Part shown: in pieces, positions 4,322 to 39,600 of the stretch
Numbering within the stretch: position 1 is the first letter of the stretch
How the letters are laid out: each line of letters opens with the position of its first letter
Assembly (NCBI GenBank): GCA_051294905.1
Contig: CM119372.1
Location: forward strand, 5,952,001 to 6,016,000
DNA length: 64,000 nucleotides
Direction: 5' to 3'
Source of the DNA: Botryllus schlosseri
Taxonomy: Eukaryota
Position numbers and translations under genes: made by a program
The notes under the pieces: model-generated
What the model was told of the DNA's origin: nothing
The model's database searches: none
The model's input: only the letters and a program-made list of their open reading frames with translations

Positions 4322-4884
4322 CCATATGGTATACCTCGACTATATCGGCTGCAAATCGTCCATAAGTTCATCATATATCGATTTTTCTAATTTATATATA
4401 CAATTATGGCATTATTATGGCATTATTCAACGTTTAAAAACAACATTTTGTTTTACTAGAGACATTTTTTAAATCATGTTTTAAGCATATTGTTTTCCAT
4501 CACGATTAGTTTAGTGCAGTGGTTCTTAAACGGAATGGCGCGCTCCCCTTTGGGGGCGTGAAAGCATCTGAAGGAGACCGAACTGCAGTCAACTGAAAAA
4601 TCTTACATGCAATTCATAGTTATTGCTCTGGGTATTGGCAGAATTTCCTATTTGAGAATTCTCTCATCAACAGTCATAACCTTCCATGACATCAAACTAT
4701 ATATAAACATGTTTATTAACTCATTTATAGAAATATTACTGTTTAAAAAATACCTCACTTTGGAAATAGGACGATAACTGTTTATAAAAACTATAAATAT
4801 AACTCATTTATAGTTCATTACCTTGAAATGACTAATAAGCATGGTGCTCGGACTAATTGCCAAATATCCTTACTATGTTTATAG

Positions 4885-5086
4885 CTATGAAATGTGGTGA
4901 ACTTCGGAATTTTCAAAATGGAGATTTTGGGGGTGCACAGTGCACATGCACACTCCTCTTATAGCGCGGTCAATACAACGTTCGTCACAGCATGTAACGA
5001 TGGTAACACAACAACATGTACTGATTCCGACTTGTCGAGTGATATCATTATTGCAAGACAATGGGATTGTGACACTACGTGTAGTG
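4885..5086 (+). pseudogene. Disabled sushi exon (type C-like)
   Basis: Homologous to the 10448 exon but with a frameshifting insertion (tgcacagtgcacatgcac), loss of YYRNGS, a Cys to Phe change and no good donor. Confidence 0.8.
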
Positions 5087-6018: not shown

Positions 6019-6327
6019 GTTTAGATGGTGCAAGAATGATTTCATTCTCTATTTGCTACACGTATATTCACGTCATTGAAATTGGGTAAAAATACAAATC
6101 ATGTTATGAAAATTCGCATTATTTGTTTACTCTCCACACGATAAACCTCTGCCACATCTGTTTCAATTACTCTTTGTTTCCTCTTCACTTTTTTTTCGAG
6201 AAGAGCATATCCGTGTTCTAAGTTGTGCCAAATGAACTAATGAAATAGAAAATCAAGTCAGACTGAAATTTTGGCATATCTACTACTTTCAAATTTCCAT
6301 CGTATAGCCTACTTAATTTTTTCACAG

Positions 6328-9300: not shown

Positions 9301-9462
9301 TTAATTTAACGGGCATTTACCGTTAATATAACTGACGGGACAAATTTACCGGTATAATTTGGGTAAATCTACGAATATTTCTAAGAGTGTGTGTCGATGA
9401 GCCTGGTCAAGATGACACAAACAAAGTAGGCGAATGGAACTACGGTGACACAAACTGTACAG
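6328..9462 (+). pseudogene. Sushi exon (type B) split by a transposon: 6328-6466 plus 9392-9462
   Basis: Removing 6467-9389 and one TG copy restores an open 210-nt exon (ITCETSPNV...KITCVDEP...[11 protein letters not shown]) with intact acceptor and donor. Confidence 0.9.
6467..9389. mobile_element. CACTA/EnSpm-like (CMC) element inserted in a sushi exon
   Basis: Termini CACTgTTAaAAATA / CACTcTTAgAAATA; 2-bp TG TSD; triplicated subterminal repeats at about 6495-6870 and 9115-9240. Confidence 0.8.
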
Positions 9463-10447
9463 GTATTAACTACGCATATAACAGTCTGTATTTCATGTTC
9501 ACACAGCTCATACACTCTGCCCAATATACTCTCATTGCCATATAGCACTACCTATCCTATGTATAAAATACATTGAAAGGTGACTGGCGATACTAAAATT
9601 GAATATGACATTCAAAAATGCAATCATAGCTGTATACTATATATTGAAAGCTTTTTAAAACAAGCATGTTTTCTATTGTTTTTAACCATGGATTGACATT
9701 GACAATTGAAAATATAGGGAAATATTAGGGATGGTGAACCTCAGAGAACCTCGGAAACAAACCCATGTGAATATTTTACATATAATATATTTTTTCACGT
9801 CATTATAACATCTTTGGTTGAGATAATTCCCCACTAAACTTTCGCCCACACACCGCATACTGCTGACAGATTGAAAGGAATTTCGGCACCAAGTGAAATG
9901 CATCTTATTTCCCTTTTCAAAAATTTCATTTCCTACGGTAGAAAAGATGGCTCGAAATATTCAGCTTTCCGTTTCTGAACCATTAGCGACTCTCTGCTGT
10001 GAGCTTGGCATGCAATGGATATTATATCAATTTATTGACATCGGCGAAACTGATATAAAGAATTCATCATTGTCTAATATAAAAAGTGTAGCGAACGAAC
10101 GGGATCCATTTTGATTTTGCATGTTTATTGTATAATATGAACCAAATCTTCTCCAGGTGTTGGCTACTGTATAACTTAATTTTGAGTTAATATCTGTAGG
10201 AAGATTATTTTCCCTTGCAAGTCTTCGTGGAAATCGAAAAAATGCAAATTTATTAGATTTTATGGAATTATTATAGCGTTTGATTGTTTCACTTGATACA
10301 TTTGGTGATGCTTAAATGACGGTGATGCTGAATGTGACGTGACGTCACATCACTTTAATGTCTTGTATACATATATTTCATTGCCATTAAATATCTAATT
10401 AGCATGGTGCTGGGACTAGTTGGAAAATATCCTTACCGTGTTTATAG

Positions 10448-10654
10448 CTATCAAATGTGGTCAACTTCCAAATTTTCCAAATGGCGAGTTTGGTGATGAG
10501 TGCTCCTCAGGTAGTGCAGTCAATACAACGTGCGTCATAACCTGTAACGATGGGTATTACCGTAATGGAAGTGACACAGCAACATGTATTGATGCCGACT
10601 TGGCGAATAATACCAATATGGATGGAGAATGGGATTATGATACCACATGTGCAC
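10448..10654 (+). CDS. Intact sushi exon (type C), upstream cluster
   Basis: TTTATAG acceptor, GTAAGT donor, 207 nt, phase 1-1, six Cys. Confidence 0.85.
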
Positions 10655-12660
10655 GTAAGTCGTCTAAAGTGTTGGCTTAGTTCCCAGTAGTTCAAACGTT
10701 GCGTTGCATTTTCTGTTTGTTCATATCATCGATAGCACTGGTCTACAAATATTTCAAAACATTATGCGCCTAAAATAGGCTAATTCTTCGGTGCTGCATA
10801 TAATTCTGGCATCAGAATTTCTCTAACACCTCCATTTTTTCGCAAAGAATTTTGCTGAATTTCATGAATTAATCAAATTTTTACTGATTGTATAACAGCA
10901 ACAGATCATATATTGCTATTGAAATAATTTCTGATGAAAATTACGCTGTTTTAGCACAGAATGACTCAGTTTTCGTTAACCTTTTATGCATTCGTTGTCT
11001 ACGTATGTTTTTTTCAATGATGACTTCTTTTCGATTGTCGAAAATATAGGTCAGTGGTTCTCAATTTGTGGTACCGTACGCGTACTATTTGAGGTAACTA
11101 CTCGAGAATTTTTACGTAGAATTTCTACGTAGGATATTGTGTGAAATCCAAAGAGACTTATGAAAACATTAAGGATGCGTTATAAACACTGAACTACAAT
11201 GATAACTCACTGTATATCATGCGTAGACATGAAAATCATGAACTTTCAGTTGGGACAGAAAGGAAGTTGAGCCTCCTTCAAAAATCCTTTTTTTCTTTGC
11301 TACTGGGATAACAGAGCTACTGTTTCACTTCTAGTAATATTTGATAAATGATTTCTAGGCTCTGTGTGTTTGTGTTTCATAATTCAACACCACAGCAGTT
11401 CTGATTATCATACCAATTACATTTCAAAGCCGTTTCTGATTTGCAGTAATACTTTACTATGATCCAATGGTCAAATTAGAACTGGAAACCCGACTCAATT
11501 ACAAATATAAATTGCAAAACATGTCGAAACTACTTTATGGTGATGTCGAAAATGAAAGATATGGAAAATACTAAAGTCTGTAATGTCAAAAGGTATATTT
11601 GGCCGGGGCGGCGTTGCGTACTTACTCGGAGGTGACTACTTACGAAATCGCAAAACATATATATCCGAGACTAATGAAAAATGGTTACTGACATTATCCA
11701 TAGGTACAATTTTCACAGATAAATGCAGTCACTGTGATTCGGGGGCTCTTTGACGTGGTTACTATGATAACTCTGATAATGGTAATGCGACTATCCCTAA
11801 ACTACTTTCTACTTTTCAAAATCTAAATTGTGAAAGTATGTCTTTTTGCGGAAAAACTGTTCACGTAGAAGTGGACGTAATCTGAAAAGATAACACCATG
11901 TAACAAAAATTTAGTTGAGCTGATTTTTTGATATTTCCTCCACAATATTTCTTGATAAAACATGTTGCGGGCATTTTTTGCCACAATTGTCGATTAAAAA
12001 TGTAATTTTAAGCTTTTAAAACTTCCCGCACCATGTCTTTCAAGCTCCTTCAATAAATTCCCTATTAACTGTGACGTTACAGCAAGCAATCTCAAATTCC
12101 TTTCGTTTTGTTCTGTTAATACACTGATTGTGGATCTATTGAGTATAATCTCATCATTAATGTCAACATCACAAATTTAAACTCTCGGCTGACTGTTTTT
12201 GGTATATCTGTGGTCTGTATATCAGTTTGAAACATGTTAGGTACAAAATATAGATAGAAGTAAGGTTTTTTATACTTATCAACTTTATTTGGCATGACTA
12301 TCGGAGATAAGGATAAAACTGGGCACTTCATGTAATCTGCGAAACATGCCGATGAAATATGGATGGATGGCTAGGGGAAGATCGGCATTCAATGTCATTT
12401 GCTATTAAAGAATCTGAAGGAACTGCTATTTCTGTATATGGGTGACATTCCAAGGTTGAGAATAGCTACAAATGACTTGACATTGCATATCCTTTTATGC
12501 CATCTCCACTTAAGCACATGCTGCGTAGGCTATTGTAGTAACTTTTCACTGCCCAAACTATCAGACAAAAAAGCTCCAGAAGACAGGGATTAAAGATACA
12601 GAAAATGACTCCGATGACGACTTCAACATCTCTCATATAGATATAAAATCAGAACCACAC

Positions 12661-18599: not shown

Positions 18600-18663
18600 A
18601 TGGCTCTTTGGGGATGTATCATAATTGCTTCACTGCTCATATCGTGCAGTGAGTCAACGACAG
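18600..18663 (+). CDS. Signal-peptide first coding exon [21 protein letters not shown]
   Basis: ATG at 18600, hydrophobic core then small residues, phase-1 donor ACAG|GTACGT matching the phase-1 sushi exons downstream. Confidence 0.75.
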
Positions 18664-21600
18664 GTACGTTACTGTTATTAAACCGTTTCCCAAAATATAT
18701 GTTTTAGAGTCAGGTTTCAATAAATACGGATGATTTTGAAACTTCAATTGAAACTTGCTCTTGCATGGCTCTTGCATGAAATATTGTATGGCGTTGGACA
18801 GTGTCGGGTCAGGCGCAATGCTAGAAATATATGACTATTCGCTTGTTTCTGTAGTTTCCCATTTAACACCGAACGAAAATCATTAGTTAACTGATGTTAA
18901 TAGATTTTCTTCGTGATATTTTCCATTCAATATCGGCAGCCTGAACGGTCGAATCATTGTTACACAATCGTCGTTGCGTGGCCTCACGTTGCCTATTTCT
19001 ATGTCCAGTTGAGTCTTGAGCTCGAGCCTCATTCGCGATACCAGAGTGTATTACTCCCACAACTGACAACTAGCAGCTTATAAAAGAGGACCATTGTTTC
19101 GAATGTTCCAACGATTGATTTAGCTGTTAAAGTTGAGTGTATAAAAGAGAAAGTCCGTGCACCAAATGCACATCGCGGAACTTGTTGTAGAAGTAAATTC
19201 AAAATCGAGCCGTTGATCTGCTTCTGATACATCCCAAATCATCATTCCAATTTAACAGCAAACAATTCCAGAGTTAAGATTAACTTTTTACGATTGATTC
19301 AATTTTCTTCGAATCCCAATCCTGACTTTGTGTCTCCTCGCGATCAAAGATTCTATAATCACAAATCAAAATTTGCCTCTCATTGCCACTCTAAATTTGC
19401 AATTTATATTAAGTTCTATACCATAATTCCAAGTCCAAGTCGATATCTCCATGCGGAATTATGCTTTCTCTCGTTTCGTGAAGCTAGATGTGGTGCAAGT
19501 AGGCTATTATAGTTAAAGATGATACTTGAATGCAGATAAAATTATTTGACTACTATTCCGCTCAATCACAAGCAGAAATAGAGAAGCTGTCGGACTTGCT
19601 AACGCGTCGAAGAATTTTGTCAGCTGATTTCTTGTGACAGCCTTCAAGACCGAAATCTGAACTATCGCTATCAGCGCGAAATCACTGAAGAGTTTTTGTT
19701 TTATTACTCACACATGATATATGACGCGTCTAGCCTTTTCGGTTGCTTCGTCATAATTCGGATTTTTGTCTTTTGTTACGCTTTTGCGAAATGAGTAATT
19801 ACGTCCCAATTAGGTGCAATGAACGGGATGGTATCTGGACACAAAATTGAGACGCTGACAGAATGGCAGGGGGGTCAAACTTAACTTGGGTCGCGGGCCG
19901 GATTCAAAAGTTTTGATCGCTCGCGTGCCGGACCAGTCAAATGATTCCAATATGTTACCTTCAAATCTATACCCTTGTTTTTCACTGGAATGCTTTATTA
20001 TCAACGCTATATGCAAAACGGTATTATATATTATATCGCGGATCACGTGGGCTCTATTCGAGCAAACACCGTTATTCGCAAGCAATGGAATTGGCAAGCA
20101 TTCGATGATTGGCCAATTGTATGCAGATATAAACCACTAAAACAGTGGCTCTGACGACGATATAAGTTGGAATATTTCTATACTGCCGCTGTATTAATCA
20201 CAATGCCTCGTTGGAACTGGAAGAGGAAGCACTGAATATATCGACTTGAGTAACTTCAAAAAATTGACAAATTGTACTTGAGTCCTCCATAAACAGAAGT
20301 ATTTCGTTACCAAGTGTACCAGTCACACATAAATGAGCACGGTCATACGCCTACATAAACTCCATAAACTCCTGCATGCCGAAATGTGGATTCAAATCCT
20401 GTACTTGGACACGCTTTTCACCAATATTTCAAATCGAACATCCAACCTGCACTCCTTTCAGACGTGCACATTGCTCAAAATAAAGTGGCAATGCGTATTT
20501 TTTAATAAAATTCATTTTGTCACCATAAAGTTTCGTTTGATGCTTCGCGGCAATTATGTGTGTCGCGAAATGTTCAGCGTGACTCAAAATGGGTTGATAT
20601 ACATTGACCTCTCTAGGATATCAAACTATAAAGGGCAGTAAAATCTGATGAGAGGTCATAAGTTTCTTATGCGCATAAATTATAGATAGATGAATAGAGG
20701 TGGTATGTCGTTCTGCTTCTTTCGTGTTTGACGCGTCCACTCAAGCAAAACAGTGGTGAAGCACGTCACACATGCATCCCGCCTCCACCCTGCTCATATA
20801 GCTGGACCTGATACCAACACAGGTTTCACTCGCCGGTATGCCTGGATTCTGGGATACAGACGGGCAAGATCAACTCATTACTTCTGGTTTGGGGATCAGT
20901 GATATAACCACTGAGCTTCCATAAAAAATATCTATTTGGTAGTTTATGACCTTATATACCTATTACACCGGGTCAGGCCTTTGTTATATTGACTCGAATG
21001 GACATGAGTAACACGTTTCTGGTCCACAAATCCATAGCAGCTAATCACCATTTTTCGCAAATATTCACCTATATACCCACCCACACATGACGGGGATTGG
21101 AAATTCAATCACAACATCACTCTCTACTTTGAAGATCTAAAATGCACCAAAAAATGTTGAATTACAAGTGGATGATGAAGGTAACTACTTGATTAGTTCG
21201 CAAATATTAACAAATTCTTGAGTACATTCAAAAATGATACAATTATATATCGTTACCAACAATCTCTAAAGTTGAATGCGCATCTTACAAAATTCGATGT
21301 CGAAATGTGGATTCAAATCCTGCACTTAATTATACTTTCCACCAACATTCCTACTGAAATATAAGACACACTATTTACAGACATGCGCATTGCACATAAC
21401 AGATGTAGTTACCAGCAAAATAGCCTACATGTACCTGCGATTAGTCCTTGCTAGTTGGATGGATTCCGTCATTATAAAGTTTCGTTTGTTGTGTGGCGAG
21501 AATTATGCGAGTCATCAATTGTGCTGTGGCGCAAAATGGTATGATAAGCATTGTCCCAGGCCATGGCAATGCTGAGATCTCATAGAAGATATGAATTTTA

Positions 21601-24600
21601 TGGTATTTGACCGTATACCTATTAAACTGCGTCAGGAATGCTCTTTAAACTTAAAGAGCTTCTTGGAGGTACAGAACTTCAATATACAATTAAATAGTAT
21701 ATTCATATTGAAATGAACCCGAATATTTTCGGCTGACACTCGTCAGGGGTAATCGTCAGCAACTGTCACCAGGCTGGTGACGTCATATTTTGTGATACGA
21801 TTGTTGATATACGATGTTCTTTCCAATTCTCTACTAGTTGCTGACGATTACCCCTGACGAGTGTCAGCCGAAAATATTCGGGTTCATTTCTTTAAACTTA
21901 CGTCGCGGGATATAGTTGCATACATAATTACATGTATTCCATAATAGTGTACCGTACTCTCTTGCCTTGAAACCGGTGGTTATCATTATCCTGACTTTAT
22001 GCAGCTGTGACATGTACTGAAGAACCTCACTTTTCTAATGGAACTGTCGATTCACCATGCCAGTCTAACAGTATCTACGGTACCTCATGTTATATAACAT
22101 GCAACGAAGGCTATTATCTGAACGGCACTGGAAATGCAACATGTGTCGACACTAATACAACAGATCATACAAACATGGACGGGGAGTGGAACTACGGAGA
22201 CACTGCATGTATACGTAAGACGCCTTAGAGTTGTGTTTAAAACAAAAATCAATTTAAAACAAACATGTTCTTGTTTAAACCATGCTATTATTTTTTTTCC
22301 AAGCCCATGACGTCACGCATATTCAATTCTGACGTCATGCGGGATTGACATGCACAATTGAAAATATAGGGTAAATATAGCTCCTTTGACGAAATAGGCT
22401 TCCAACCCATGCCGTATACCAGGGGTCGAGAACCTTTTTCGATCGAAGAGCCATATTGGCCAAATATTTTCAATTGTCACTCCCAAAAGAGCCATTCATA
22501 TCAATCAAATGTTACGTCACAATTGAAAATTCGTGGGCTAATACATGGGCCATATTTTTCTGCCCATGTACGTAAGTGGAGCCAAACATGGTCACTACAG
22601 CAGTACATACGCACTGCAGGCTGTGATACGTCAGTGACGTGGGGTTAGGGGGATAAGTGATGCAGTGCTTCACATGTCGTGCGGGGCTAAGAGAAGGAAA
22701 ATTGTGAAACCTTCAATGATTTTTGGCATTTTCGATCGGTGTTTTGAATGATTAGATTTTGAGCATTTTTATTGCCAAAATCACAGAATTTCCATGTTTA
22801 TTGTTCGGAAATAAATCGCAAAAGAACAGGTACAGATGAGGCAGAGACGGTCCAGGCCTTATCAGTGATAGCGCAACTTATCGTAAATAGCTTAGAATTT
22901 CTAATCACTGTTATTTCTCGAATGTTATTGTCGCGTTGGTTCAGAAAATCTAAATATTGATCGACTTCTAAAGTATTCGGCGTAACATAACGTTGCGCTA
23001 CACACCTATTTTACGGTGGTGCTAGAAAGCTACTTAGCAATCAAGAACATGGATACTGGATAGCTATGGCGTTCTTTTTAAATAGAATGTGTAATTGTGA
23101 ATGTCACTTCTAAGTCAGTTTATTTCCCGGCGTTGAAAAGGAAGACAATGTGTAAGTGAAACTGCATTATCCTACAAGCGTCACCATGTCAGTTATTCTC
23201 TTTGATCAATCAAGGTATCGTGCAATCCAAGATTTCGAAGTGCACGATGGAGGGTATATCGAATTCGCGAGTGGTGTTAGTCGCCAGCGCAACAGCAACT
23301 TAAATTTGAGAATTTTGTAAAGGGGTGACGAGTCCCTAATCTTGTATGCTCCGCTGTCTTAACCTTTCCAAGACCTGTTCATGCTGCTACGAGAATAATT
23401 ATCCTGCCCACCATGAAAATTTTCTGACAAGTTTGGGCAATATCGATAAATCAAGTACATATTTGTATCGCGAGCGTTACGAAATGCGCGAATGTATCAG
23501 ATAATCATGTCAGATTAGTAAGTATCAATTAGTCCAAATGTCCGTATCTTAGTAAGATAATCTTCACAGCCATTACCTGCGGCACATCTGCGGAAGTACA
23601 GGGCGGGTACATCGCAGATGAATGTGACAGTGGAAGTCTATACGATGCTACATGCCAAGTAATCTGCTATGATAGTTATTATATCAGGGGGGATAAAGTG
23701 GTCACGTCGATATACCTCATTCAGATGATATAAACGAGAATGGGAAATGGAATCAATATAAATATAATAAAAAATATTATTTAACGTCGTCCCGCGCTTT
23801 TTGAATTCAACATACCCCCATTGATGATAGTGAAATATTTTGCACCTCCCCTATCGCCATATCGCCATACCACAAAAATATTTATAAGAGCAACCAGAAT
23901 GTTTGCAATGCCAACGCATTGTTTGTGGCATTGAAGGTGCAGTGTGACTGTCGTTGGCAAACGCGAATATTGCAATAATTTGATGACTACATTCATTGCA
24001 GTATAATTTACTTCACGCGTTTTCTTACTTATAACTAGGCCTACGCATATCTACTGGTGCAGCTGGTCTGTGCCATACTTTCCGAGTGCGTTCACCGTAC
24101 ATACCGGACATTTCATAGTTCACAGGTAATTCACTTATTGTTGACAGTACAGACGACAATCGATGCATATTACATTTCATGTTCATTAAGTTCGTGACAG
24201 GGGTTGTAAAACTACGGTACGCATATCCTAAAGTAATTTCGGGGGTACGCAAGCAATTTCATGCTATGACTAATTGGTAAATTTTCTTACTTAATTTTAG
24301 CTATGAGGTGTGGAGTAGTTCCTAATATTCCAAACGGAGAGTATAGGGAGGGATGCTCTGATAATGTGGTCAATGCAACGTGCACTATATCGTGTAACGA
24401 TGGGTATTATCGGAATGGAAGTGACACAGTTAACTGCACTGATCCCGACCTGGAGAGCAATACCAATATGGATGGAGAATGGAATTACGATACTGCATGT
24501 ATACGTAAGTTGTCTTTATATAGCGGTGTACTTCCGAGTAAAGTTCATTGTTGCAATATTTAATTAGTACACTCGTATTACTACCAACGAAAATGGGTAA

Positions 24601-27600
24601 AATACAGATCCCATTTCGTGGAAACTTATTTGGTAATTTGCATGGAACTCTCCAACATCCTTTTCCCGCTTGACTCTTCTCCTTCAGAATAGCATATCCA
24701 TATGTTCCAACTTTGCAAAATTAATTAACCAGAAAATCGTGTAAGTTCAGTAGCCTATGTAGTCTTATGGACAACTTTTTGAAATTTCGATTCTACACGA
24801 CATCAATCTTCACAGCCATTACCTGTGGGACATTTCCGGACGTACCGAACGGGTTTATAGCAATTCAATGTGACAGTGGAAGCGAATACAATGAAACATG
24901 TCAAGTAACTTGTTTTGAGGGTTACTATATTAGCGGGGAAGAAAAGATAACGTGCGTCGATGAGCCTGTGTCAGATGACACAAACCCACAAGGCGAATGG
25001 AACGACGGTAACACAACGTGTACAGGTATATTAACTATATAAGGATATGATTATATATTCACAAAGTCTATGCAACACATTCGACCTCGTGTGCATGAAC
25101 GTAAAATGACGATAGTGCACTGTAATCATACAGGTTGGAAAATTTTACAAATTATTCTAGCTATGAAGTGTGGAGTTGCTCCTTATATTCCAAAGGAGAG
25201 TATAAGGAGGTATTCCCCTCTGATTACGAGGTCAATGCAACGTGCATTGTAACTTGTAACAATTGGTAATATCGGAATGGAAGTGACACAGCAGAATGTG
25301 TTGATGCCGACCTTGAGAGCAACACCAATGTTGATGGATAATAGAATTACGATACTGCATGTATGCGAAGATTGCGAACATTGTCTTTATATAGCGGTGT
25401 ACTTCCGAGTTAAGTTCAGAAGTTACATGTAATATAGCGATATTTAATTTGCACACTCATATTAATATCAACGAAAATGGGTAAAATATCGATCATATTT
25501 CATGATAAATTATTTGTTAACTTTGATAAAACTCTCTAACATCCGTTTCATGCTTGACTCTTTCTTCTCCGTAAAAATAGCATATCTATGTTCCAACTTT
25601 GCAGAATGAACGAAATAGAAAATTGTGCAGTATAGGCCTAATTCACTTCACGCGTTTTTCTTACTTATGGCTACGCGTAGTTACTGGCACAACTGATCTG
25701 TGCCATACTTTCCCAGTGCGTTCACAGTACACACCGGACATTTCATAGTTCACAGGTAATCCACTTATTGTTGACAGTGGAGTCGACAATCGATGCATAT
25801 TACATTTCATGTTATATATCGTTACCAACAATCTCCAAAGTTGAATGCGCATCTTACAAAATTCGATGTCGAAATGTGGATTCAAATCCTGCACTTAATT
25901 ATACTTTCCACCAACGTTCCTACTGAAATATAAGACACACTATTTACAGACATGCGCATTGCACATAACAGATGTAGTTAGCAGCAAAATAGCCTACATG
26001 TACCTGCGATTAGTCCTTGCTAGTGGGATAGATTCCGTCATTATAAAGTTTCGTTTGTTGTGTGGCGAGAATTATGCGAGTCATCAATTGTGCTGTGGCG
26101 CAAAATGGTATGATAAGCATTGTCCCAGGCCATGGCAATGCTGAGATCTCATAGAAGATATGAATTTTATGGTATTTGACCGTATACCTATTAAACTGCG
26201 TCAGGAATGCTCTTTAAACTTACGTCGCGGGATATAGTTGATTATACATATATTCGATAATAGTGTACCGTACTCTCTTGCCTTGAAACCGGTGGTTATC
26301 ATTATCCTGACTTTATTCAGCTGTGACATGTACTGAAAAACCTCACTTTTCTAATGGAACTGTCGATGCACCATGCCAGTCTAGCAGTATCTACGGTACC
26401 TCATGTTATATAACATGCAACGAAGGCTATTATCTGAACGGCACTGGAAATGCAACATGTGTCGACACTAATACAACAGATCATACAAACATGGACGGGG
26501 AGTGGAACTACGGAGACACTGCATGTATACGTAAGACGCCTTAGAGTTGTGTTTATAACAAAAATCAATTTAAAACAAACATGTTCTTGTTTAAACCATG
26601 CTTTTATTTTTTTCCCAAGCCCATGACGTCACGCATATTCAATTGTGACGTCATGGGGGATTGATATGCACAATTGAAAATATAGGGTAAATATAGCTCC
26701 TTTGACGAAATAGGCTTCCAACCCACGCCATATACCAGGGGTCGAGAACCTTTTTCGATCGAAGAGCCATATTGGCCAAATATTTTCAATTGTCTCTCCC
26801 AAAAGAGCTATTCATGTCAATCAAATGTTACGTCACAATTTTTATTCGTGGGCTAATACATGAGCCATATTTTTCTGCCCATGTACGTAAGTGGAGCCAA
26901 ACATGGTCACTACAGCAGTACATACGCACTGCAGGCTGTGATACGTCAGTGACGTGGCGTTAGGGGGGGTAAGTAATACAATGCTTTTCATGTCGTGCGG
27001 GACTAAGAGAAGGAAAATTGTGAAACCTTCAATGATTTTTGGCATTTTCGATCGGTGTTATGACTGATTAGATTTTGAGCATTTTTATTGCCAAAATCAC
27101 AGAATTTCCATGTTTATTGTTCGGAAATAAATCGCAAAAGAACAGGTACAGATGAGGCAGAGACGGTCCAGGCCTCATCATTGATAGCGCAACTTATCGT
27201 AAATAGCTTAGAATTTCTAATCACTGCTATTTGTCGAATGTAATTGTCGCGTTGGTTCCGAAAATCAGAATATTGATCAACTTCTAAAGCATTCGGCGTA
27301 ACATAACGTTGCGCTACACACCTATTTTACGGTGGTGCTAGAAAGCTACTTAGCAATCAAGAACATGGATAGATATGGCGTTCTTTTTAAATAGAATGTG
27401 TAATTGTGAATGTCACTTCTAAGTCAGTTTATTTCCCGGCGTTGAAAAGGAAGACAATGTGTAAGTGAAACTGCATTATCCTACAAGCGTCGCCATGTCA
27501 GTTATTCTCTTTGATCATCAAGGTATCGTGCAATCCAAGATTTCGAGGTGCACGATGGAGGGTATATCGAATTCGCGAGTGGTGTTAGTCGCCAGCGCAA

Positions 27601-30600
27601 CAGCAACTTAAATTTCAGAATTTTGTAAAGGGGTGACGAGTCCCTAATCTTGTATGCTCCGCTGTCTTGACCTTTCCAAGACCTGTTCATGCTGCTACGA
27701 AAATAATTATCCTGCCCACCATGAAAATTTTCTGACAAGTTTCGGCAATATCGATAAATCAAGTACATATTTGTGTCGCGAGCGTTACGAAATGCGCGAA
27801 TGTATCAGATAATCATGTCAGATTAGTAAGTATCAATTAGTCCAAATGTTCGTACCTTAGTAAGATAATCTTCACAGCCATTACCTGCGGCACATCTCCG
27901 GAAGTACAGGGCGGGTACATCGCAGATGAATGTGACAGTGGAAGTCTAAACGATGCTACATCCTAAGTAACCTGCTATGATGGTTATTATATCAGGGGGG
28001 ATAAAGTGGTCACGTCGATATACCTCGTTCAGATGATATAAACGAGAATGGGAAATGGAACTAATATAAATATAATAAAAAATAATATTTAACGTCGTCT
28101 CGCGCTTTTTGAATTCAACATACCCCCATTGATGATAGTGAAATATTTTGCACCTCCCCTATCGCCATACCACAAAAATATTTATAAGAGCAACCAGAAT
28201 GTTTGCAATGCCAACGCATTGTTTGTGGCATTGAAGGTGCAGTGTGACTGTCGTTGGCAAACGCGAATATTGCAATAATTTGATGACTACATTCATTGCA
28301 GTATAATTTACTTCACGCGTTTTCTTACTTATAACTAGGCCTACGCATATTTACTGGTACAGCTGATCTGTGCCATACTTTCCGAGTGCGTTCACAGTAC
28401 ATACCGGACATTTCATAATTCACAGGTAATTCACTTATGGTTGACAGTACAGACGACAATCGATGCATATTACATTTCATGTTCATTAAGTTCGTGACAG
28501 GGGTTCTAAAACTACGGTACGCATATCCTTAAGTAATTTCGGGGGTACGCAAGCAATTTCATGCTATGACTAATTGGTAAATTTTCTTACTTAATTTTAG
28601 CTATGAAGTGTGGAGTAGTTCCGAATATTCCAAACGGAGAGTATAGGGAGGGATGCTCTGATAATGTGGTCAATGCAACGTGCACTATAACGTGTAACGA
28701 TGGGTATTATCGGAATGGAAGTGACACAGTTAACTGCACTGATCCCGACCTGGAGAGCAATACCAATATGGATGGAGAATGGAATTACGATACTGCATGT
28801 ATACGTGAGTTGTCCTTATATAGCGGTGTACTTCCGAGTAAAGTTCAATATTGCAATATTTGATTTGTACACTCGTATTACTACCAACGAAAATTGGTAA
28901 AATACAGATCCCATTTCGTGGAAACTTATTTGTTAATTTGCATGGAACTCTCCAACATCCTTTCCCGCTTGACTCTTCTCCTTCAGAATAGCATATCTAT
29001 ATGTTCCAACTTTGGGTCAAATATAGATCCTATTTCGTGAAAAATTATTTGGTAATTTGCATGGAACTATCCAACATCCTTTTCCCGCTTGACTCTTCTC
29101 CTCGACAGTAGCATATCTATGTTTCAACTTTGCAAAATGAATGAAACAGAAAATCGTGTAAGTTCAGTCGCCTATGTAGCCTTGTGGACAACTTTTTCAA
29201 ATTTTGATTCTACACTCCATTAATATTCACAGCCATTACCTGCGAGACATCTCCGAACGTACCGAACGGGTTTATATCAGATGAATGTAACAGTGAAAGC
29301 GAATACAATGAAACATGTCAAGTAACCTGTTATGAGGGTTACTATATTAGCGGGGAGGAAAAGATCACGTGTGCCGATGAGCCTGAGCCAGATGACACAA
29401 ACCCAGAAGGCGAATGGAACTACGGTAACACAACGTGTACAGGTATTAACTGTAATTACGGAGATATTTATTTTCATGTTCACAGTCTCTCCTAAATAAA
29501 CTTTGCCTGCTGAAATAATATTTAAATACGCTATATTCTAACTTAAATATAGGACTACCATCAATGATGACTTTACCATGTACAAAAACAAAAAAATGAC
29601 GAATTAGCATGATTCCCGGACTGATGTATACTTATTCTTTTTATAGCTATGAAATGTGGTGAACTTCCCAATTTTCCAACTGGCGATTTTGGTCCTGAAT
29701 GTTCTCCTGGTAGTAATGTCAATACAACGTGCAACATAACCTGCAAGGATGGTTATTATATGAATGGTGGTGACACAGCAACATGTGTTGATGCCGACTT
29801 GGCGAGTAATAACAATATGACTGGACAATGGGATTATGATACTACATGTACACGTAAGTCTTTTAGGCTAAATTCAGAGTGAAGTTCACATGTAGCATGA
29901 ACGATTGCATTTTCTATTTGACACATTTAAACTCATTTCACCGAAAAGGGATCAATATGCGGATATCATTTTGGGAAAGGGTAATTTGCTTTGCAAAGTT
30001 TTGTCATTGGCAACACTAAAACACCTTTAGTATGCGCCGATCGTTTAAGACCCCTGGTATCGATCATCGTCCATAAATACTGAAATCCGGCGTTATTTTA
30101 TATTGATCGAAATGCGGATATAATTTGGGGAAAGGGTAATTTGCTTTGCAAAGTTTTGTCATTGGCAACACTAAAACACCTATAGTATGCGCCGATCGTT
30201 TAAGATCCCTGGTACCGATCATAAATACTGAAATCCGGTTATTTTATATTGATCGAAGTGATTCCCAGACCTTTATCTATCCGGAAACATACTTGCTATA
30301 AATTGCGTCTGCTAGCCTATTTGAAACCTTGGCCTTAGTTGAACACCAAGAAGTTTCTAGGAATTCAGTCAAGGGTGATAAGTACGGTGATTTTCTACCT
30401 AAAAACGGAAGATTTTGACCTTGGAAAATCTCAATTACGGCCGAATTTGACCTAACCCGTGCAAATTAGGTGTTTTCACACATAATGTTAGAATCGTAAT
30501 GCTTATCTTCATTTCTGGTTGGAGCTGTCTGTCCTTACGAAGTAGTTTAACCTGAAAAAAAATTTACCCCAGAAACGGACAAATTTTGACATGAAAAAAC

Positions 30601-33600
30601 TTTATTTTAATGAAATCTGTCCCTATATGAAGAATTCCAGTAGTTACATTACGCATTATGGTAGAAATAATTTAATAAAAATTTTAGCACAACAAAAGAT
30701 ACTTTCTTACATTATCGGGTAGAAGGTCCTTACTAAGTAGCTTGCCAAGAATGGACAAAGAACGGTCAACAGCAGCAGCAGCAGCAGTTGTTGGCTGACA
30801 ACACCGAAGGTGTGCGTACACTGCTGGTGATAAACCGTGCTGCTTCATTCTGGCAATGGTGCCTACATCACAATTTTCATCACGCTCATCTTGATATAAG
30901 AACCATGCAATGCTCACGCAGTCTTGCTTCAGTTGGGATATTGCGGTACGTTGAGCATAACACCATGTCAACCTATTTGTTTCATGGGAATATTTATGAT
31001 TCACAATGAGCAAACAATGGGCCGTCTGCAACGGTAGACCTATAAAGTAGGCTACAAGCTGTAAAATGTCAAAGGATAAGTTCACCGACAGTTCAAAATC
31101 TACGATACGAACGAAATGCAGGTGGCAAATAAGTTTTAATTTTGACATTTTTTGACCTAACGCTACAATTTTGACTTTTTGTGACAGGTAAAAAATCGAG
31201 TTAGGCCAGTTTTTCTTAACCCAGTGACCACCAGCGCCACCCTTAACTTGTACGAAGTCACCTTCAAAAATGGATTGACTTGACTTGACTCGAGTCAAAA
31301 TGTGAAGTGACTCGAGGTGACTCGTGACTCGAAGGTAGTGACTTGATCCCAACACTGACGCAGACGATTTCGAAATAAGAGATATTCATCCGCTCACATA
31401 TGCCACCCATAATATTTACTGTCCACGTAATAATATTCAATGTCATCATCATCATCATTGGTTTATTAGCAATTTTATCAGTTCAATACACCACAAAAAT
31501 GCGATACAATGAAAAGAAAGGAAGATGTCGAAGCGACTAGGAGTTGTCTATGGAATCGGACACCCACCTTGGCCTAGGCGATGTAAAGAGGAGGCATGCA
31601 CACTGAATGAAAGTAAAGAAGATAGTATAGAAAAAGGAAGCGACAAGAAATAGGGCGGCATTTCAGGGGAAGCGAGATCGATAGGTCAGTCGTGGTCCGG
31701 TAATTTTGAGGATGGACTGTATTTATTTAGTAGTAATTGCTTGTATTTCGACTTGAATGTGGACATGCTCGTCGACTGCCTGATGGCCGGCGGGATACTG
31801 TTCCACACATCAGGTCCGGCATATTTGATAGAGCGATGATCTTTTCGGTCGATCATATGATATTTGGACGACGTGGACGCGCGTGTGTTGTACTATGTGC
31901 GCTTCGAGATTTGACAGATTTTGTCGGATGTTGATGTGCAATGCGAACGCAGGGATATATATGCTGTACAAATCTGGTAAATTTACAAAGAAATTTCTGC
32001 AACATATACATCATACAGAAACATCTATCAACACATACGGTCCCTTTCTTTCTTATCTAATTTCGTATAAATTGATAGTTTTTCTTCCATGTGTGGTTCA
32101 CTACTTACTTATCTAACCGGACGCTGCTTGTGATGTCACAGTTACGCCTTAGTTGTTTACTACGAGTCTCAGAAAAACCCGCAACGCGTAACCTCAAGGT
32201 AACCTATTACAGGTCGTCGTATCCGCCATTAACAAATGGTCAACTGAGCCTGCGGTGCTGATATTCCTAGTTTCAGGAATAAGATGGTATATCCTAAACT
32301 GATTTTCTAACTTATCAACCCTATCTGTGACAACAAGTCTAACCGCCGTGGCGAGATAGCGCAGCGGTATAATCCGCGGCTGCAACACCAATGGGTACGG
32401 GTTCGAGTCCGACCGAGGTCGACTTCCGAATTCCGATACCTAAGTGTTGGAGGTTTACCTAGGCTCCTCCTCGCCACCTCATCCGCGTCAGCGTTGTCTT
32501 ACAAAAGCCTAGAGGTGGGCCGTGCTATAAGTCGGCAGTTACGGAAAATAAGACGAATATCGGCCTGGTGTAAATGACCATAGTAGTCGATAAACACCAT
32601 GAATACCCCAAAACAAACAAACAAGTCTAACCGCCGAGACCGACCGTGTAGCCATTGCCTTATAATATAATGGCTATGGTGTAACCCCATTAGCTACGAT
32701 TTTCAGTTGTTTCTTGTACCCAACTATGTACTATACCGAAATTGGTACTTGGTCAACCAGTTCCGCATGACCTACACCTGTTTTGCGAACGAGGTTGAAT
32801 CAGGTCAAATCGCAACGAAAATGATGTCAAAGACACAGAGACATTCAGTTCCGCGTATACAATGGCTTCTGGGGTTCGGAAGCTAATCAATTTTGCCAAT
32901 AGCCTGGTAAAATGCAGTAGTGAGTAACTGTCAGTAATCTTGCGATGAAATTCTGGTAACTTGACTTTGCGGCTAAATTAAGTTAATATTACATATCAAC
33001 AACAAAAAAGTGGCGAGATAGCGCAGTGTCATAATCCGCGACTGCAACACCAATATGTGCGGGTTCGAGTCCGACCGAGGTCGACTTCCGAATTCCGATA
33101 CCTAAGTGTTGGAGGTTTACCTATAGGCAGCACCGTAACTGCCGCACCCCAAACCCCCAATTGGGGGGGGGGCCGAGCTCGATGGGGGGCCCAAAAATAT
33201 TTCGTGAATTAGCATAAATCATAGAGTATTTTTTTTAAATAGATGCAATTTTTTAAAAAAAAATTTCGCGCCGCGCGCGAATTCACGTAGCCGTTTATCT
33301 GTCTTATTGGGTATTGGGCCATTACCGCGCCACGACCCACCAAGACATACAATCAAGTTTTAGGCCATATAACATGCGACTCCAAGAAGTGTGCCAGAAC
33401 GATTGGCAGCGAGAAAAGCTTGGTCGAAAAGGTCTATGCCCTTATGCAGATCAAAGACTTCGCTATATATACAAAATACATATAGGTTTAATTGTCCATA
33501 GGCACCTAAATGACTGGCGCCGAATGTTCCTGTCTTTGCAATCTGAACCTCACAAGACAAATACCATCCCGCTGGGAAAAATTTTATGCCAGTGAAGAAA

Positions 33601-36600
33601 TACCAATTTGAAATCGTGTGCTTCTCTTAGTTTAGAAGCCTACGTTTGGGCGGTTCTATATTTTCTGATATAGCAGACTGGAAGTCACGAAATAACATCA
33701 TGTAACGAAGTCATATCAACGGTTCCGCCCGCCCGAAGATGTTTAATCATTATTTACGAGCCCTCCCGTTTTTAAGACACTTCACTCAGCTCTACCGGTA
33801 AATCTAATTACGTGAGTATAGAAGACAATAAATTGATAGCATATTATATATGCAGTCGCCGATCTGATTTACCGATTTTATCATAAATTATCGAAAATTT
33901 TCGCGCTTGGCGCTGGCTCTCAATACAGTACGGGTAATTTCGTGACAAACGTGAACAACGTGATGGGGGGTCGTTTTATCACCCTATGGGAGCCCAAGAC
34001 CCACGTTCTTGGAGGCCTGACGAGGTGCTGTTTCGTTCCTGCCAACGGGTATACGCCCGAAGATGTTTAATTATTATTGAGTGGTCCTACCATTTCAAAC
34101 ACACCTCACTCAGCTCTACCGGCAAATCTGATTACGTGAGTAGAGAGGGCAATATATTGATAGCATATTATATATGCAGTCGCCGATCTGATTGACCGAT
34201 TTTATCATAAATTATCGAAAATTTTCGCGCTTCGCGCAGGCTCACAATACAGTACGGGTAATTTCGTGACAAACGCGAACAACGTGATGGGGGAGGGGCG
34301 TTTTATCACCCTATGGGAGCCCAAGACCCACGTTTTTGGGGGCCTGACGAGGTGCTGTTTTGTTCCTGCCAACGGGTATACGCCCGAAGATGTTTAATTA
34401 TTATTGAGTGGTCCTACCTTTTCAAACACACCTCACTCAGCTCTACCGGCAAATCTGATTACGTGAGCAGAGAGAAGATAAAAATTGATAACAATGTATG
34501 CAATTCCCGATCATACTGACCGATGAAATCATGAATACTAGAAATTTTGCGCGCTTCGCGCGCTCAGGCGACTAAAGCTGATTCACTAAAGAAACTCCCA
34601 ATGAATATGATGAATAGTGGTAAACAGTGTATCGCCGGAGGGGGGTCTGGGGGGCGAAACGTTCGGTCTATAACACTCTGGGGGGCCCAAGACCAACGTT
34701 TTTTGGGGGGCCTGACGAAGTGCTGTTACGGCCCTGCCTATAGGCTCCTCCTCGCTACCTCATCCGCGTCAGCGGTGTCTTACAAAAAGCCTAGAGGTGG
34801 GCCGTGCTATAAGTCGGCAGTTACGGAAAATAAGAAGAATATCGGCCTGGTGTAAATGACCATAGTAGTCGACAAACACCATGAATACCCCAAAACAAAC
34901 AAACAAAAACATATCAAAATGTAAAATTACAAGCTACATGCAGCTATTGGCCGCGACCGGTAATTTGTTGTATATTTTGCTGAAATTTCTTTGTAAATCT
35001 ACCAGATTTGTACAGCGTATATATCCCTGCGTTCGCATTGCAAATCAACATTCGACAAAATCTGTCAAATCTCGAAATTTTTCATCGCGCTAGACGCGAA
35101 TTGTGGGTCGTCATTCCTTGCAACATGTTTCCATGAATGCAGTGGTTTATTATAATTCATGTAAAATTAATTGCGCGTGATTTTAGATCGCCAATTACCC
35201 GTTAAAACACCCCCGTCTCGCTAGCTCTGGTTATTTTCCACATCATGTTTCAAACAAGGTATTTTATCCCCCAGCGCACAGCCTGTCGAAATGAAGCTTT
35301 TTGGTCAAAATGATTAACTAAATATATTTGTATTTTAGAGCTACAATATTAAATCTTCAGAATATTTCTTCATCTTATCATTGAGGATGATGCAGTTTAG
35401 TGTTGTGACACGCAACCTCACATGAACATTATATAATATGACCGACCGGACTTCGAACTCTTACCCCTTTTTTACTTCCATCCTTAAAATATGGGGGCGG
35501 CAGATATAGGCAATTTTTGAAAAGAGGTGCTGCAGGAAAAAAGGTCAAGAACCACGAGTTAGGCTGATGCAAAAATAGTATCAAGTAGATAGAAGCTGTG
35601 GCTTTTACAGATGTAGATATTGTAGGGTGGATGGTCCTTTCGTATAGTAAGGTCAATGGAACGTCCGTCATGACCTGTGACGATTGGTATTATCGAGGCG
35701 AGAGTAATAAGGGGCCTAACGACCTATGTCATATTTTGCCTCATCAAAATATCTGCGTATCCATGCTAGTGCTAATGAAATCATTAAATATCTCTATAGC
35801 GTAACGTGGATCTTCTAGTGTGTTAAATAGTCCCACCATCGCATTGCGAGTTAGGTAAGGGGTCGCCGACCTACGACCCGAAAGCCGCGTGCGGCTCGTT
35901 CACGCAACTGCATCTGCATGCTGCGGATTTCTAGCTTTAAAGTGAACTCAATGTACTTCGTATAATTTTTATGAAATATTGCTTCGCCAGTGATTTGTTT
36001 TCCTCAAGAACGTGCTCGTTCATTTTTATGCTGTTGCAAAGTAGACTAACTAGCATAGTATTGTCGCGCTTGTCACTCGCCGATGGTACGTGGAATTTCC
36101 ACTCGCAATGTGGGCCTAGATAACAACTGCCTCAGTGCAGTGATATCTTGGTAGCTGGGTTACTGTATTTGTTACATTAATATGTTGCAACTATGATGAA
36201 AAATTGGAAAGATATTCTTCAGCATCGAACCAATTCAGCAATTCTAAGATTTCATTCGCCAGTTGAATTGCCACCGAACTTCAACGATAAGTCATTATTA
36301 GGGCGGTTTTTTTGACATGTCAAAAATAGGAAAAAATATTTCAAAAATTGTAGCGCTAGGAATCATAAACGGCATAATGAAACAAATAGGTTGGCATGGT
36401 GTTATGCTCAACGTACCGCAATATCCTGACTGGAGCAAGTCTGCGTACGCAATGGTCATTGGTTTTTATATCAACAAGCGCATGATGAAAAATTGTGATA
36501 TAAACAAAATAGTCAGAATGAAGCAACACGGTGTGTCACCAGCCGCGTACTGTACACACAACTTCAGTGTTGCCAGCCAACACTGCTACTGTTGAACGTT

Positions 36601-39600
36601 CTTTCTCCGTTCTTGGCCAACTACTTAGTAAGGACAGACACTCTCTACCCGAGAATGTAGGAAAATATCTTTCGTTGTACTACAACAAATTTAATTAGTT
36701 CTCCCATAATACGTGATATAACTACTGGAATTCTTCATAGGTCCAGATTTAGTTCAAATATACTTTTTTCATGTAAAAACTTGTCATGTTCAAGTCAAAA
36801 AAATTAGTTCAGGCCTAACTACTTTGTAATGACAGGCAGTTCCAACCAGAAATGAAGATAAGTAGTACAATTAGAAGATTTGTGGGAAGTAACTAATTTG
36901 CATGCGTGAGGTCAAAATTTGGTCAAAATTAGGTTATTTAATGTAAAAAAATGTAAAAACTTTGATTGTTTAGGTCACAATCTTTTGTTTTTAGGTAATT
37001 AGGTCGCCCTAGTCATTACACAAGAACTACATAGGAGTGGGACTTCTGTCATTCAGCAAAAGTCATTCCCCAAATTTATTGCATTATGTCAACTTTATTT
37101 CTCTATAAAGGGGATTTTCTGGACAGGTTAAAATTGAATTCATTGAACCCTCGCGCTGCGAACGAGATTGTAAATTAGCTCAGAGCAATCACTCATTTAT
37201 ATAAGTCATAGAATGCCATCATATCATGTATTGATCTAGAGCAGACTCTTAGGTACTATATAGAACAGTGGTTCCCAGCGTGGGCGATATCGCCTCCCAG
37301 AGGGCGATTTTGAGAAACAAGGGGGTGAAAATACCAAAGGGTCGACTGGGGGGCGAAAATGTTAGAACGTCCAGTGAGGTATATTTAATTAACACTGTCA
37401 AAAAATACATGTTTTGACGGTTTATTCTGCATATGACGCGAAAAAAGTCACCTCAATAGAAAGTAGACGCGGAAATCGGGTTTCGAGCACCTACCACCTC
37501 GGAAAATGGCCTTTTTTCAGTAAATTCTCCAGCGATCAGACCTAGGTGAATACTTTACCCGATTATATGTCCTCTTTTTCGGATACGTAAGTATGGGAGC
37601 GGAAATTTGTATCGAGGTGGATAAGGGATCGATTAGTCGAAAAAGGTTTGGAACCACTGATATAGAATTTACTCCGTAACAATCAATGTAATGTAATAGT
37701 GTTCTGGTCAATTTTTCTTTTAGTCATTGATATTATTTACTCTATAGCGTACATGGTGCTGAATATTGACACCCAAAGCTCCGCGGTGAAGGGGATGGAT
37801 ACTAACTTGACAGTGCGGATTAACTCTAGTCCTGACGGTCTTCCTGTTGATATCTCGGTTTTCGTGATCTCTTCGCCAAACAATACCTTGAATGGAATGG
37901 CGTTGGAGCAGTATTCTTACAATGATGATGACGGTTTTTTTACATACGGCATCACCATAACGAATGTGGTTGAATCAGACGAAGGGAGTTATGAATTCGA
38001 ATCATCTGCAAGCTCAGAATCTGAATCTGATGTATATCCAAATATATCTTTTTCGGGGATGCAATATCTGTACGTTCAAGGTATGTCAAGAAAATTGCGA
38101 ACATTAACAGGAAGGATTGTTCGGTTCATGTATTTCAATTTACAGTTATTCCGGAAAACTTCCAATTTTATATTAACGAGACGGGGGTAAATGAGGATAT
38201 CACATACGTGAGAGGAGACCCTAACAGCAACGTAACATGTAGAGCTGACGGAAAACCGGAACCTGATTATAATTGGAACACATCCGATGCAACAAGCCTA
38301 CCCGATGGAGTTTCCACAAATAAGCAAATTTTAAATCTCGAGAAATCGTACTTTTCGGATAATGGCACGTACGTCTGCGGTGCATCAAATAATGTATCCA
38401 AAGAATACAACCAAACTCCAAATCGCTCGTTATACATTGAAATCGAAGGTAAGTGTCAAGAAAGTATCTAAATATACGGTACTGCTCGTATTATCTCGTG
38501 TGTGCGCTATGCGCTTACCACTTATTGCTTTAACTGCATTACAACGGACAAATAAATATTAACTTAAAATCTAATATTCGTACACGTATATTCTATGATG
38601 AATTTTGTATATTGGGATTTGAATCCGGATGGGCAAAATCAGTGGTTCCCAAAGTGGGCTATAGTACACCTCGGCGTATTTTGAGACATGAGCTAAGACA
38701 ACGTAGGTCGAGGTTTGGGGGCGTAAACATACGAAGGGGCGATAGGTGGGCAAAAATGATGGGGCTTTCAGTCATTTATATTTAATTAACTCATTGGATT
38801 GCGGCCAAGTTTCATATAATCGATTGAGGTTGATATAAATCCGACTCAATGCTTGACACATCCAGCTCGCAAGTGGGGAAAAGGATCAAATCAAGAAAAT
38901 TTGCTTCACGTTTCACCACTTAAACTTATTTATGAATTCCATCAACTTCGTAGAAGTGCAGCCAAACCTACGTCACTTTGCAATATTAAGCATGAAAAAA
39001 TATTATTTTAATTAGTTGAAGTAGAACTAATATACGAACAAACCTACTTGAGTGAGTGAAAAAATTAGATAAACCTTGATTCGTACGGAAAAGTATTACT
39101 TCGTTACTGATGACCTTAAGCTTTTAGGCGATAAAGATACAGCGAGCTTGATACGGGGGTAATGTGTCAAAATAGCTTAATAACCAGTCGACCAAATTCT
39201 AAGAAGCTAATGCTATATCTGTATTACGTCTGTGAATTCTGTTAGGAATTCCGGTTATTATTTCCGAAAATCAAAAACTTCCGCTGAATGACGATTTCCA
39301 CTTGCAATGCTTGATGGACGCTAACCCGATGCCGAGCATGGTTACTTGGAGTACTGGCGGGGAGGAATATGATGACAGTGAAGATGCATTCGCGATTGCC
39401 TCAAATGTTGAGAATCGGGAAAACGGGAGCTACTATCAGTATCAGAACTCACTCACTTTATACTCGCAACTATGTGTCGGCAATCAGACCGTTGCATGCA
39501 AGCCGTCCAATACCATTGGAGAAAGTGGAACGTCAGTCACGTATACACTAAATGAAGGTAATTGCCACCTAGCAGAAAAAATGTACAGCAATGTGCATAA

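Follow-up and report, generated by a model that had tools for sequence, protein, structure and literature searches.

Sushi exons of the window

We analysed a 64-kb stretch of Botryllus schlosseri DNA (assembly GCA_051294905.1, contig CM119372.1, positions 5,952,001 to 6,016,000 of the forward strand), hereafter the window, by which we mean all 64,000 nucleotides; coordinates are counted from its first letter unless a chromosome is named. It contains no N and has a G+C content of about 40%. The subject of this report is an array of sushi exons, also known as complement control protein (CCP) exons, and the receptor-type protein tyrosine phosphatase (PTP) gene whose N-terminus it probably encodes. 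Using tblastn with three exon peptides, and later a hidden Markov model (HMM) built from nine intact exons, we found exactly ten sushi-like exons between 22.0 and 29.9 kb on the plus strand. Seven of the ten are intact, with a length of 204-210 nt divisible by 3, an AG acceptor, a GT donor and phase 1-1. The features of the array are as follows.

22005-22214, +, sushi exon A1: intact, 210 nt, phase 1-1
about 23570-23753, +, pseudo-exon B'1 (D-like): 4-nt deletion, 3' end and donor gone
24301-24504, +, sushi exon C1: intact, 204 nt, modelled fold that of a CCP module
24816-25025, +, sushi exon D1: intact, 210 nt, older layer, 88% identical to D2
about 25161-25366, +, pseudo-exon Cpsi: 1-nt deletion, TAA and TAG stops, GT donor lost
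26321-26530, +, sushi exon A2: intact, 210 nt, three substitutions relative to A1, all non-synonymous
about 27878-28058, +, pseudo-exon B'2: 4-nt deletion and 3' loss as in B'1, plus a TAA
28601-28804, +, sushi exon C2: intact, 204 nt, donor GTGAGT
29233-29442, +, sushi exon D2: intact, 210 nt, colinear with exon D' of a paralogue
29647-29853, +, sushi exon E: intact, 207 nt, colinear with exon E' of the same paralogue

The number, phase and length of the exons given in the initial annotation of this DNA were recovered by tblastn, the HMM scan and the reading of splice sites. Its division into seven intact and three dead exons was borne out by Pfam scores and splice sites on the one side and by frameshifts, stops and lost donors on the other.

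The exons of the window encode sushi/CCP modules with the CCP fold. Against Pfam Sushi (PF00084), for which the gathering cut-off is 20.7, the peptides of all nine intact exons reach 25-33 bits, and a PDB profile search with the same nine exons matches CR2, CR1, factor H, DAF and E-selectin. In the alignment of the exon peptides, the framework cysteines C4, C32, C46 and C67 and the tryptophan W61 are invariant, while an extra invariant pair, C19 and C28, makes the sushi domain of the window a six-cysteine variant. An AlphaFold2 model of C1 (mean predicted local distance difference test score, pLDDT, 77.7) shows six strands, and nearly all of its top 50 Foldseek matches are CCP modules (CD55, CD46, CR2, factor H, E-selectin), with probabilities of 0.99-1.00 and query-normalised TM-scores of at most 0.71; the E-values, 4e-3 or weaker, are weak because the sushi domain is short. 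Each intact exon corresponds to one module with phase 1 at either end.

The three dead exons are broken in recognisable ways. B'1 and B'2 both lack the same 4 nt, present as TGTA in the intact exon B of the paralogue, and the deletion removes a Cys codon; in both, the last 25 nt or so of the exon and the donor are gone, and AT-rich sequence follows the Trp codon. As had been proposed beforehand, the shared deletion predates the duplication that produced the two copies, and the copy at 27878 (B'2) alone has gained a stop, an additional TAA. Cpsi has kept its acceptor, but one nucleotide is deleted, TAA and TAG codons interrupt it, and GA stands where the donor GT should be. As the dead exons are without donors, they are expected to stay intronic, with the frame open through the seven intact exons.

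Exons of a putative receptor tyrosine phosphatase

Further coding features of the same strand flank the array on both sides.

18600-18663, +, signal-peptide exon, putative first coding exon: 64 nt, 21 residues, phase-1 GT donor
37748-38080, 38146-38448 and 39246-39557, +, three immunoglobulin (Ig)-like exons: phase 1-1, good splice sites
39573-40058, +, exons of a C-type lectin domain (CTLD): Lectin_C match, 93% amino-acid identity to the paralogue
46205-47610, +, fibronectin type III (FN3) region: fn3 match, colinear with the paralogue
48107-48188, +, transmembrane exon: hydrophobic segment followed by YK, GT donor
50964-55454 (PTP D1) and 58748-62781 (PTP D2), +, tyrosine phosphatase domains: Y_phosphatase matches

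The reading frame of the signal exon, of which paralogous copies lie at chromosome C2:5849755 (86%) and 5791844 (75%), chromosome C2 being that of the window, joins both to A1 and to the first Ig exon (Ig1). Phase 1 is kept throughout, from the signal donor through all intact sushi exons to the Ig exons, and the joined open reading frame of the signal exon, the seven sushi exons and the three Ig exons amounts to 822 codons with no stop. A single transmembrane segment is located between the ectodomain and the PTP domains. PTP D1 contains the catalytic motif VHC / SAGVGRTG, split by an intron, while PTP D2 reads, within 62289-62781, VHCG and then NGSEYVG, so that the catalytic Arg is apparently absent; PTP D2 is probably inactive, as in many receptor phosphatases. 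Assignment to a vertebrate subtype was attempted with one PTP exon and dropped, as PTPRA/E, PTPRS, CD45 and LAR score alike.

Between 29.9 and 37.7 kb we found no further signal or terminal exon, and coding-like conservation between E and Ig1 is confined to one decayed sushi remnant (35646-35780). One candidate for a transmembrane or terminal exon, at 31380-31540, combines a hydrophobic stretch and a basic tail with a phase-1 acceptor and a stop; it was rejected because from 31443 on it consists of an interspersed repeat, dozens of whose copies are 99-100% identical. Such copies of this repeat (31443-31620 and beyond) are spread over many chromosomes, as if the element had been active very recently. 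The rest of the interval is also rich in repeats: 30.4-35.5 kb, between E and the Ig exons, is mostly repetitive and includes a tandem pair at 33.1-34.7 kb, and just 3' of exon E (29950-30257) there is a local tandem repeat of about 155 nt with 90-94% identity.

The upstream paralogue and selection on the exons

The paralogue referred to above lies 120 kb upstream (chromosome C2:5849755-5891478) and contains a signal exon, a sushi array, three Ig exons, CTLD, FN3 region and transmembrane exon in the same order as the window. Its sushi exons are A, B (intact), C, D, C' (loop deleted), D' and E' (Trp replaced by Cys); the segment C-D is colinear with C1-D1, and C'-D'-E' with C2 (flank)-D2-E. Only 1.8 kb separate E' from Ig1, whose phase-1 acceptor is conserved and which is interrupted by about 520 nt. 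The transmembrane exon has a conserved donor, homology to the window gene stops just after it, and no close phosphatase paralogue was found nearby. This neighbour could be a decoy-type receptor or a pseudogene. Since it has a single A and an intact B, the set A2-B'2-C2 was gained, and B lost, in the lineage of the window, which supports the exon birth and death that the initial annotation had read from the window by itself.

Over five matching exons, window and paralogue are 89.0% identical with no gap column in 1041 nt, whereas identity in the flanking introns is 85.0%, and 64 of their 1865 alignment columns are gaps (the other 1801 being aligned bases). The pooled ratio of non-synonymous to synonymous substitution rates (dN/dS) since the gene duplication is about 0.66, older exon pairs give 0.3-0.8, and the young exon pairs together show 5 non-synonymous changes and 1 synonymous change. 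These values point to weak purifying selection since the gene duplication, and not demonstrably to diversifying selection; the framework residues are held and the remainder evolves fast. We claim no positive selection, because the counts are too small.

Mosaic structure and origin of the duplication

Self-comparison of the window resolved the array into layers of different age. The features involved are listed here.

21243-24715, +, young copy 1 (A1-B'1-C1 with introns): about 97.3% substitution identity to 25812-29014
25812-29014, +, young copy 2 (A2-B'2-C2 with introns), from self-comparison
25135-25627, partial extra copy: 79% identical to the C block, includes Cpsi
25639-25813, +, fragment homologous to the B'-C intron: 175 nt, 88-89% identical
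28896-29014 and 29015-29132, +, 119-nt direct repeat: 88% identical, right edge of the young copy
21654-21888, unstranded, 235-nt insertion with an internal inverted repeat: copy 1 only
22415-23465, and about 26730-27760 in copy 2, unstranded, interspersed repeat of about 1 kb in the A-B' intron: more than 40 genomic copies, 75-80% identical

A tandem block of about 3.7 kb had been described for this region. The duplication itself stands, as does the extra partial copy at 25135-25627, but the single block does not: it is a composite of about 3.2 kb of young sequence (about 97%) and about 0.46 kb of much older sequence (88%). Within the young part, 21243-21653 and 25812-26222 are 98.8% identical, and 21889-24715 and 26211-29014 are 96.3% identical (about 97.3% when only substitutions are counted). 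The older layer comprises 24594-25061 and 29013-29476, that is D1 and D2, at 88%, while Cpsi and E share 77%. The young A-B'-C copy thus sits within an older C-D-C-D-E array. Its left edge, 25811|25812, is a sharp junction to non-homologous sequence; at its right edge, marked by the 119-nt direct repeat, young sequence meets the old C-D intron. The 235-nt insertion is found only in copy 1 and therefore arrived after the duplication; relatives of it occur at chromosome C2:5890218-5890364 and 5950501-5950674 (91-97%), and in an Rfam scan of 18-38 kb, the insertion included, neither the hammerhead nor any other family reached its gathering score. The repeat of about 1 kb is present in both copies and is therefore older than the young duplication; no colinear match to it was found in the A-B intron of the paralogue.

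These comparisons directly show the exons and their phases, the paralogue, the duplication with its junction and the sequence of events. In its simplest form, the history would have started from an ancestral array A-B-C-D-...-C'-D'-E, still visible in the paralogue, and would have run as follows: (i) a duplication of the gene as a whole (about 15% divergence in introns), (ii) in the window copy, the arrival of the 1-kb repeat and the loss of function of B and Cpsi, (iii) placement of a copy of 21243-24715 between the fragment that follows Cpsi and the old C-D intron, by which the old C' would have been overwritten (divergence about 2.7%), and (iv) the appearance of the TAA in B'2 and the entry of the 235-nt element into copy 1. 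The mosaic does not result from one unequal crossover, nor from a tandem duplication of the simple kind. As the source of the young copy we favour, though it is not proven, either duplicative insertion or a long conversion tract, with one non-homologous end.

An assembly artefact, in which two haplotypes have been placed end to end, is unlikely to account for the duplication, and we give it the lowest standing among the explanations considered in this report. At about 2.7%, the difference between the two copies is inside the range of allelic divergence in marine invertebrates. We compared 24250-30249 with the k-mer contigs (Logan) of DNA run X1, which is probably of the assembled animal; all DNA runs found are of one sample from one animal. 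Each of the 22 variant letters that X1 shows in copy 2 equals the base of copy 1 (22/22), a point in favour of an artefact; we read all of these letters as paralogous variants. The depth of X1 (8.4-10.4 for copy-specific contigs, about 16 for shared ones) comes with no single-copy baseline to compare. Against an artefact, a contig of 924 nt covers 24943-25866 with 0 mismatches; it starts in D1, takes in Cpsi and the fragment and ends 54 nt inside copy 2, so that the novel, non-homologous junction exists in the reads and is crossed by a contig independent of the assembly. Variants of the A1 and the A2 type are both found in X1 (depth 10.4 and 9.1), and no X1 contig over this interval skips the young copy. 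The window contains no N, the 235-nt insertion is confined to copy 1, and the pairs D1/D2 and Cpsi/E are far too divergent for alleles and have each their own counterpart in the paralogue.

Relatives and comparison with known receptors

The best database matches of the window domains are Styela clava proteins, with identities of at most about 49%. Among these relatives, the 'E-/P-selectin-like' proteins and LOC120335372 share with the window the six-cysteine sushi domain and a long acidic loop before the Trp. They differ from the window gene in being sushi-only, with 6-8 repeats in the 'selectin-like' proteins, or in being an adhesion G-protein-coupled receptor (GPCR) with about 56 repeats; the six-cysteine subtype therefore occurs in several architectures. 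P0003 of the same species carries eight near-identical repeats, which shows that exon amplification recurs in this sushi family. Selectins proper have an N-terminal C-type lectin domain, an EGF domain, six-cysteine CCP repeats, a transmembrane segment and a short tail. With them the window shares the six-cysteine CCP modules and the CTLD, but the order is reversed, no EGF domain was found and in place of a short tail there is a tandem phosphatase, which places the window gene outside the selectins.

The window's own gene was not found among the 150 best sushi proteins, of which only one, P0061 (Logan SRR32906199 contig 5464), has PTP motifs. This is a full-length transcript contig of 5.8 kb from another phosphatase receptor, an ascidian one, which likewise has a long sushi array outside and two PTP domains inside. 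It differs in containing WxxW, a ricin-type lectin and 14 sushi domains, and in having no Ig, CTLD or FN3. Its PTP domains are only 27-41% identical to those of the window across most exons, with one stretch of 44 residues at 64%, and P0061 belongs to a different gene lineage. It shows that sushi arrays on phosphatase receptors are not unique to the window, and provides a precedent for a single gene here. We found no published work on sushi-bearing phosphatase receptors in ascidians, and, among the papers searched, no description of a six-cysteine sushi array with Ig, C-type lectin and FN3 domains on a receptor tyrosine phosphatase. In vertebrates, CD45 (PTPRC) has two PTP domains and changes the length of its ectodomain by skipping of N-terminal exons, which encode O-glycosylated, mucin-like segments. 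These segments are not CCP modules; CD45 serves here as an analogy to illustrate the possible effect of a variable distal ectodomain.

In human CR1 (CD35), intragenic copies of a block of several CCPs give rise to copy-number alleles with differing CCP numbers (PMC8702080). The window resembles CR1 in its tandem CCP exons and in the duplication of a multi-exon block within the gene, but the unit of CR1 is seven CCPs, variation among people is documented and the tail is short, whereas the young unit of the window contains two working CCP exons and a dead one, the tail is a tandem phosphatase and one genome has been seen. Within Botryllus, proteins of the fester family, a group of allorecognition receptors, have an N-terminal V-like Ig domain, one sushi domain and three transmembrane helices, and FcoR has the order Ig-sushi-Ig-Ig, one transmembrane segment and a tail with an immunoreceptor tyrosine-based inhibitory motif (ITIM)/hemITAM; the ectodomains of both vary by skipping of cassette exons and by haplotype copy number (PMC12582321). 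Like them, the window gene would be a tunicate surface receptor with sushi and Ig domains. Its seven sushi, three Ig, CTLD, FN3 and two PTP domains set it outside both families.

Interpretation of the locus

Based on the above observations, we favour, with a probability of about 0.6, the interpretation that the array is the N-terminus of a receptor-type PTP with seven sushi domains, three Ig domains, a CTLD, FN3, a transmembrane segment and two PTP domains. We infer from the continuity of phase 1 between the signal exon and the Ig exons, and from the colinear paralogue, that all parts would be carried on one transcript and that the array would lengthen or diversify the ectodomain of the phosphatase. 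Several results weigh against this. The distance from E to Ig1 is 7.8 kb and rich in transposons. The paralogue is without phosphatase domains, so that the link between this ectodomain and a phosphatase is not obligatory, and of the closest annotated relatives in Styela clava, P0003 and P0008 are sushi-only and P0001 is the adhesion GPCR. A search for a predicted protein matching one exon gave 0 candidates in a protein collection whose length window excluded long proteins. Constraint on the exons is weak, A1 against A of the paralogue gives a dN/dS of 1.7 (based on few changes), and A1 and A2 differ by no synonymous and three non-synonymous substitutions. Finally, no RNA read fell on the sushi exons in three shallowly sampled bulk RNA runs (X7, X9, X11), which were compared with 24250-30249 after reading 6-13% of each run, tissues unknown. 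The RNA reads obtained fall almost wholly on a transposon part at 26552-26712, and since all of them continue into unlike sequence, they come from other copies of that repeat. Given the sampling of 6-13% and the unknown tissues, the missing reads do not demonstrate silence.

That the array is instead a gene in its own right, coding for a secreted or lipid-anchored protein of sushi domains only, and that the phosphatase receptor downstream is independent and has an unrecognised first exon, we regard as improbable. Such a gene would suit the 7.8-kb gap, the lack of RNA joining the two parts, and the 'selectin-like' sushi-only proteins of Styela clava, which are of the same six-cysteine subtype (P0003, 589 aa; P0008, 477 aa). 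Against it, no terminal or stop-bearing exon was found after E, the candidate at 31380-31540 running into a young repeat, and no signal exon was found between E and Ig1, where the sole conserved coding-like block is the decayed sushi remnant. Moreover, the phase-1 acceptor of Ig1 is conserved, as for an internal exon, and the paralogue keeps the order with its array close to Ig1. Of about the same low probability is the explanation that the array is a decaying or silent relic, either because the gene is unexpressed or because the sushi exons are skipped, the intact exons being just unbroken so far. Consistent with decay are the death of three exons out of ten, the absence of RNA reads on the exons in the three runs, the 5:1 excess of non-synonymous changes in the young pairs, a pooled dN/dS (0.66) marginally below 1, and the presence of orphan and broken sushi exons upstream (4884-5082 and 6327-9464). 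Yet in the seven exons all six Cys and the Trp are present, the frame is intact and the splice sites fit the consensus, while the dead exons beside them, of similar age, took on frameshifts, stops and donor loss; compared with the paralogue they are free of indels and less diverged than the introns; older pairs give a dN/dS of 0.3-0.5; and the RNA sampling was shallow, with tissues unknown.

The initial annotation had gone further and likened the locus to hypervariable recognition receptors, the length of whose ectodomain varies by cassette skipping and unequal crossover. This we consider doubtful, and less probable than either of the preceding explanations. The arithmetic behind it is correct, as each of the 128 subsets of the seven intact exons (128/128) leaves an open frame between the signal exon and the Ig exons; as evidence of skipping it fails, because phase 1-1 symmetry is generic to CCP exons. 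The 3.2-kb tandem repeat at about 97% would be a substrate for unequal exchange, and both the copy-number alleles of multi-CCP units in human CR1 (PMC8702080) and the exon skipping and copy-number variation of the fester family (PMC12582321) offer precedents. On the other side, no X1 contig skips the young copy, the architecture is that of a phosphatase receptor, unlike the fester or FcoR families, and a dN/dS of about 0.66 is not demonstrably that of diversifying selection. The likeness as stated is not upheld, and the label 'recognition receptor' should give way to the inferred 'distal ectodomain of a receptor tyrosine phosphatase'. A yet more speculative extension, for which we would claim little likelihood, is that the number of sushi domains varies by haplotype or isoform and so tunes phosphatase signalling at cell contacts, in the manner of a CD45-like size switch, with the phosphatase-less paralogue taking part, be it as a decoy or as a partner, in self/non-self or gamete recognition.

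To return to the receptor-type PTP that we favour, the locus as it stands is a case of ordinary exon gain, loss and shuffling in a fast-evolving gene family. Its value lies in offering a cleanly dated example of the growth and shrinkage of a modular ectodomain, with the phosphatase receptor adjoining a paralogue in which the ectodomain is complete and the phosphatase absent. Should variable exon use or copy number prove true, phosphatase receptors of variable size could be studied here in a tractable model outside vertebrates.

Other sushi exons in the window and on the chromosomes

Four further sushi exons lie upstream of the signal exon, between 238 and 10659 of the window, and resemble the remnant of another array unit.

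238-450, A-like sushi exon: intact
4884-5082, C-like sushi exon: broken
6327-6482 and 9387-9464, D-like sushi exon: split by about 2.9 kb
10447-10659, C-like sushi exon: intact

On a larger scale, the six-cysteine subtype forms same-strand clusters at chromosome C2:5741653-6240930 (0.5 Mb) and C4:1.18-2.26 Mb. Some of the arrays in these clusters repeat every 270 nt or so in open frames of 196-349 aa (chromosome C2:5798234-5799296 and 5923866-5925604), and in such arrays several modules appear to share an exon or to be separated by very short in-frame introns.

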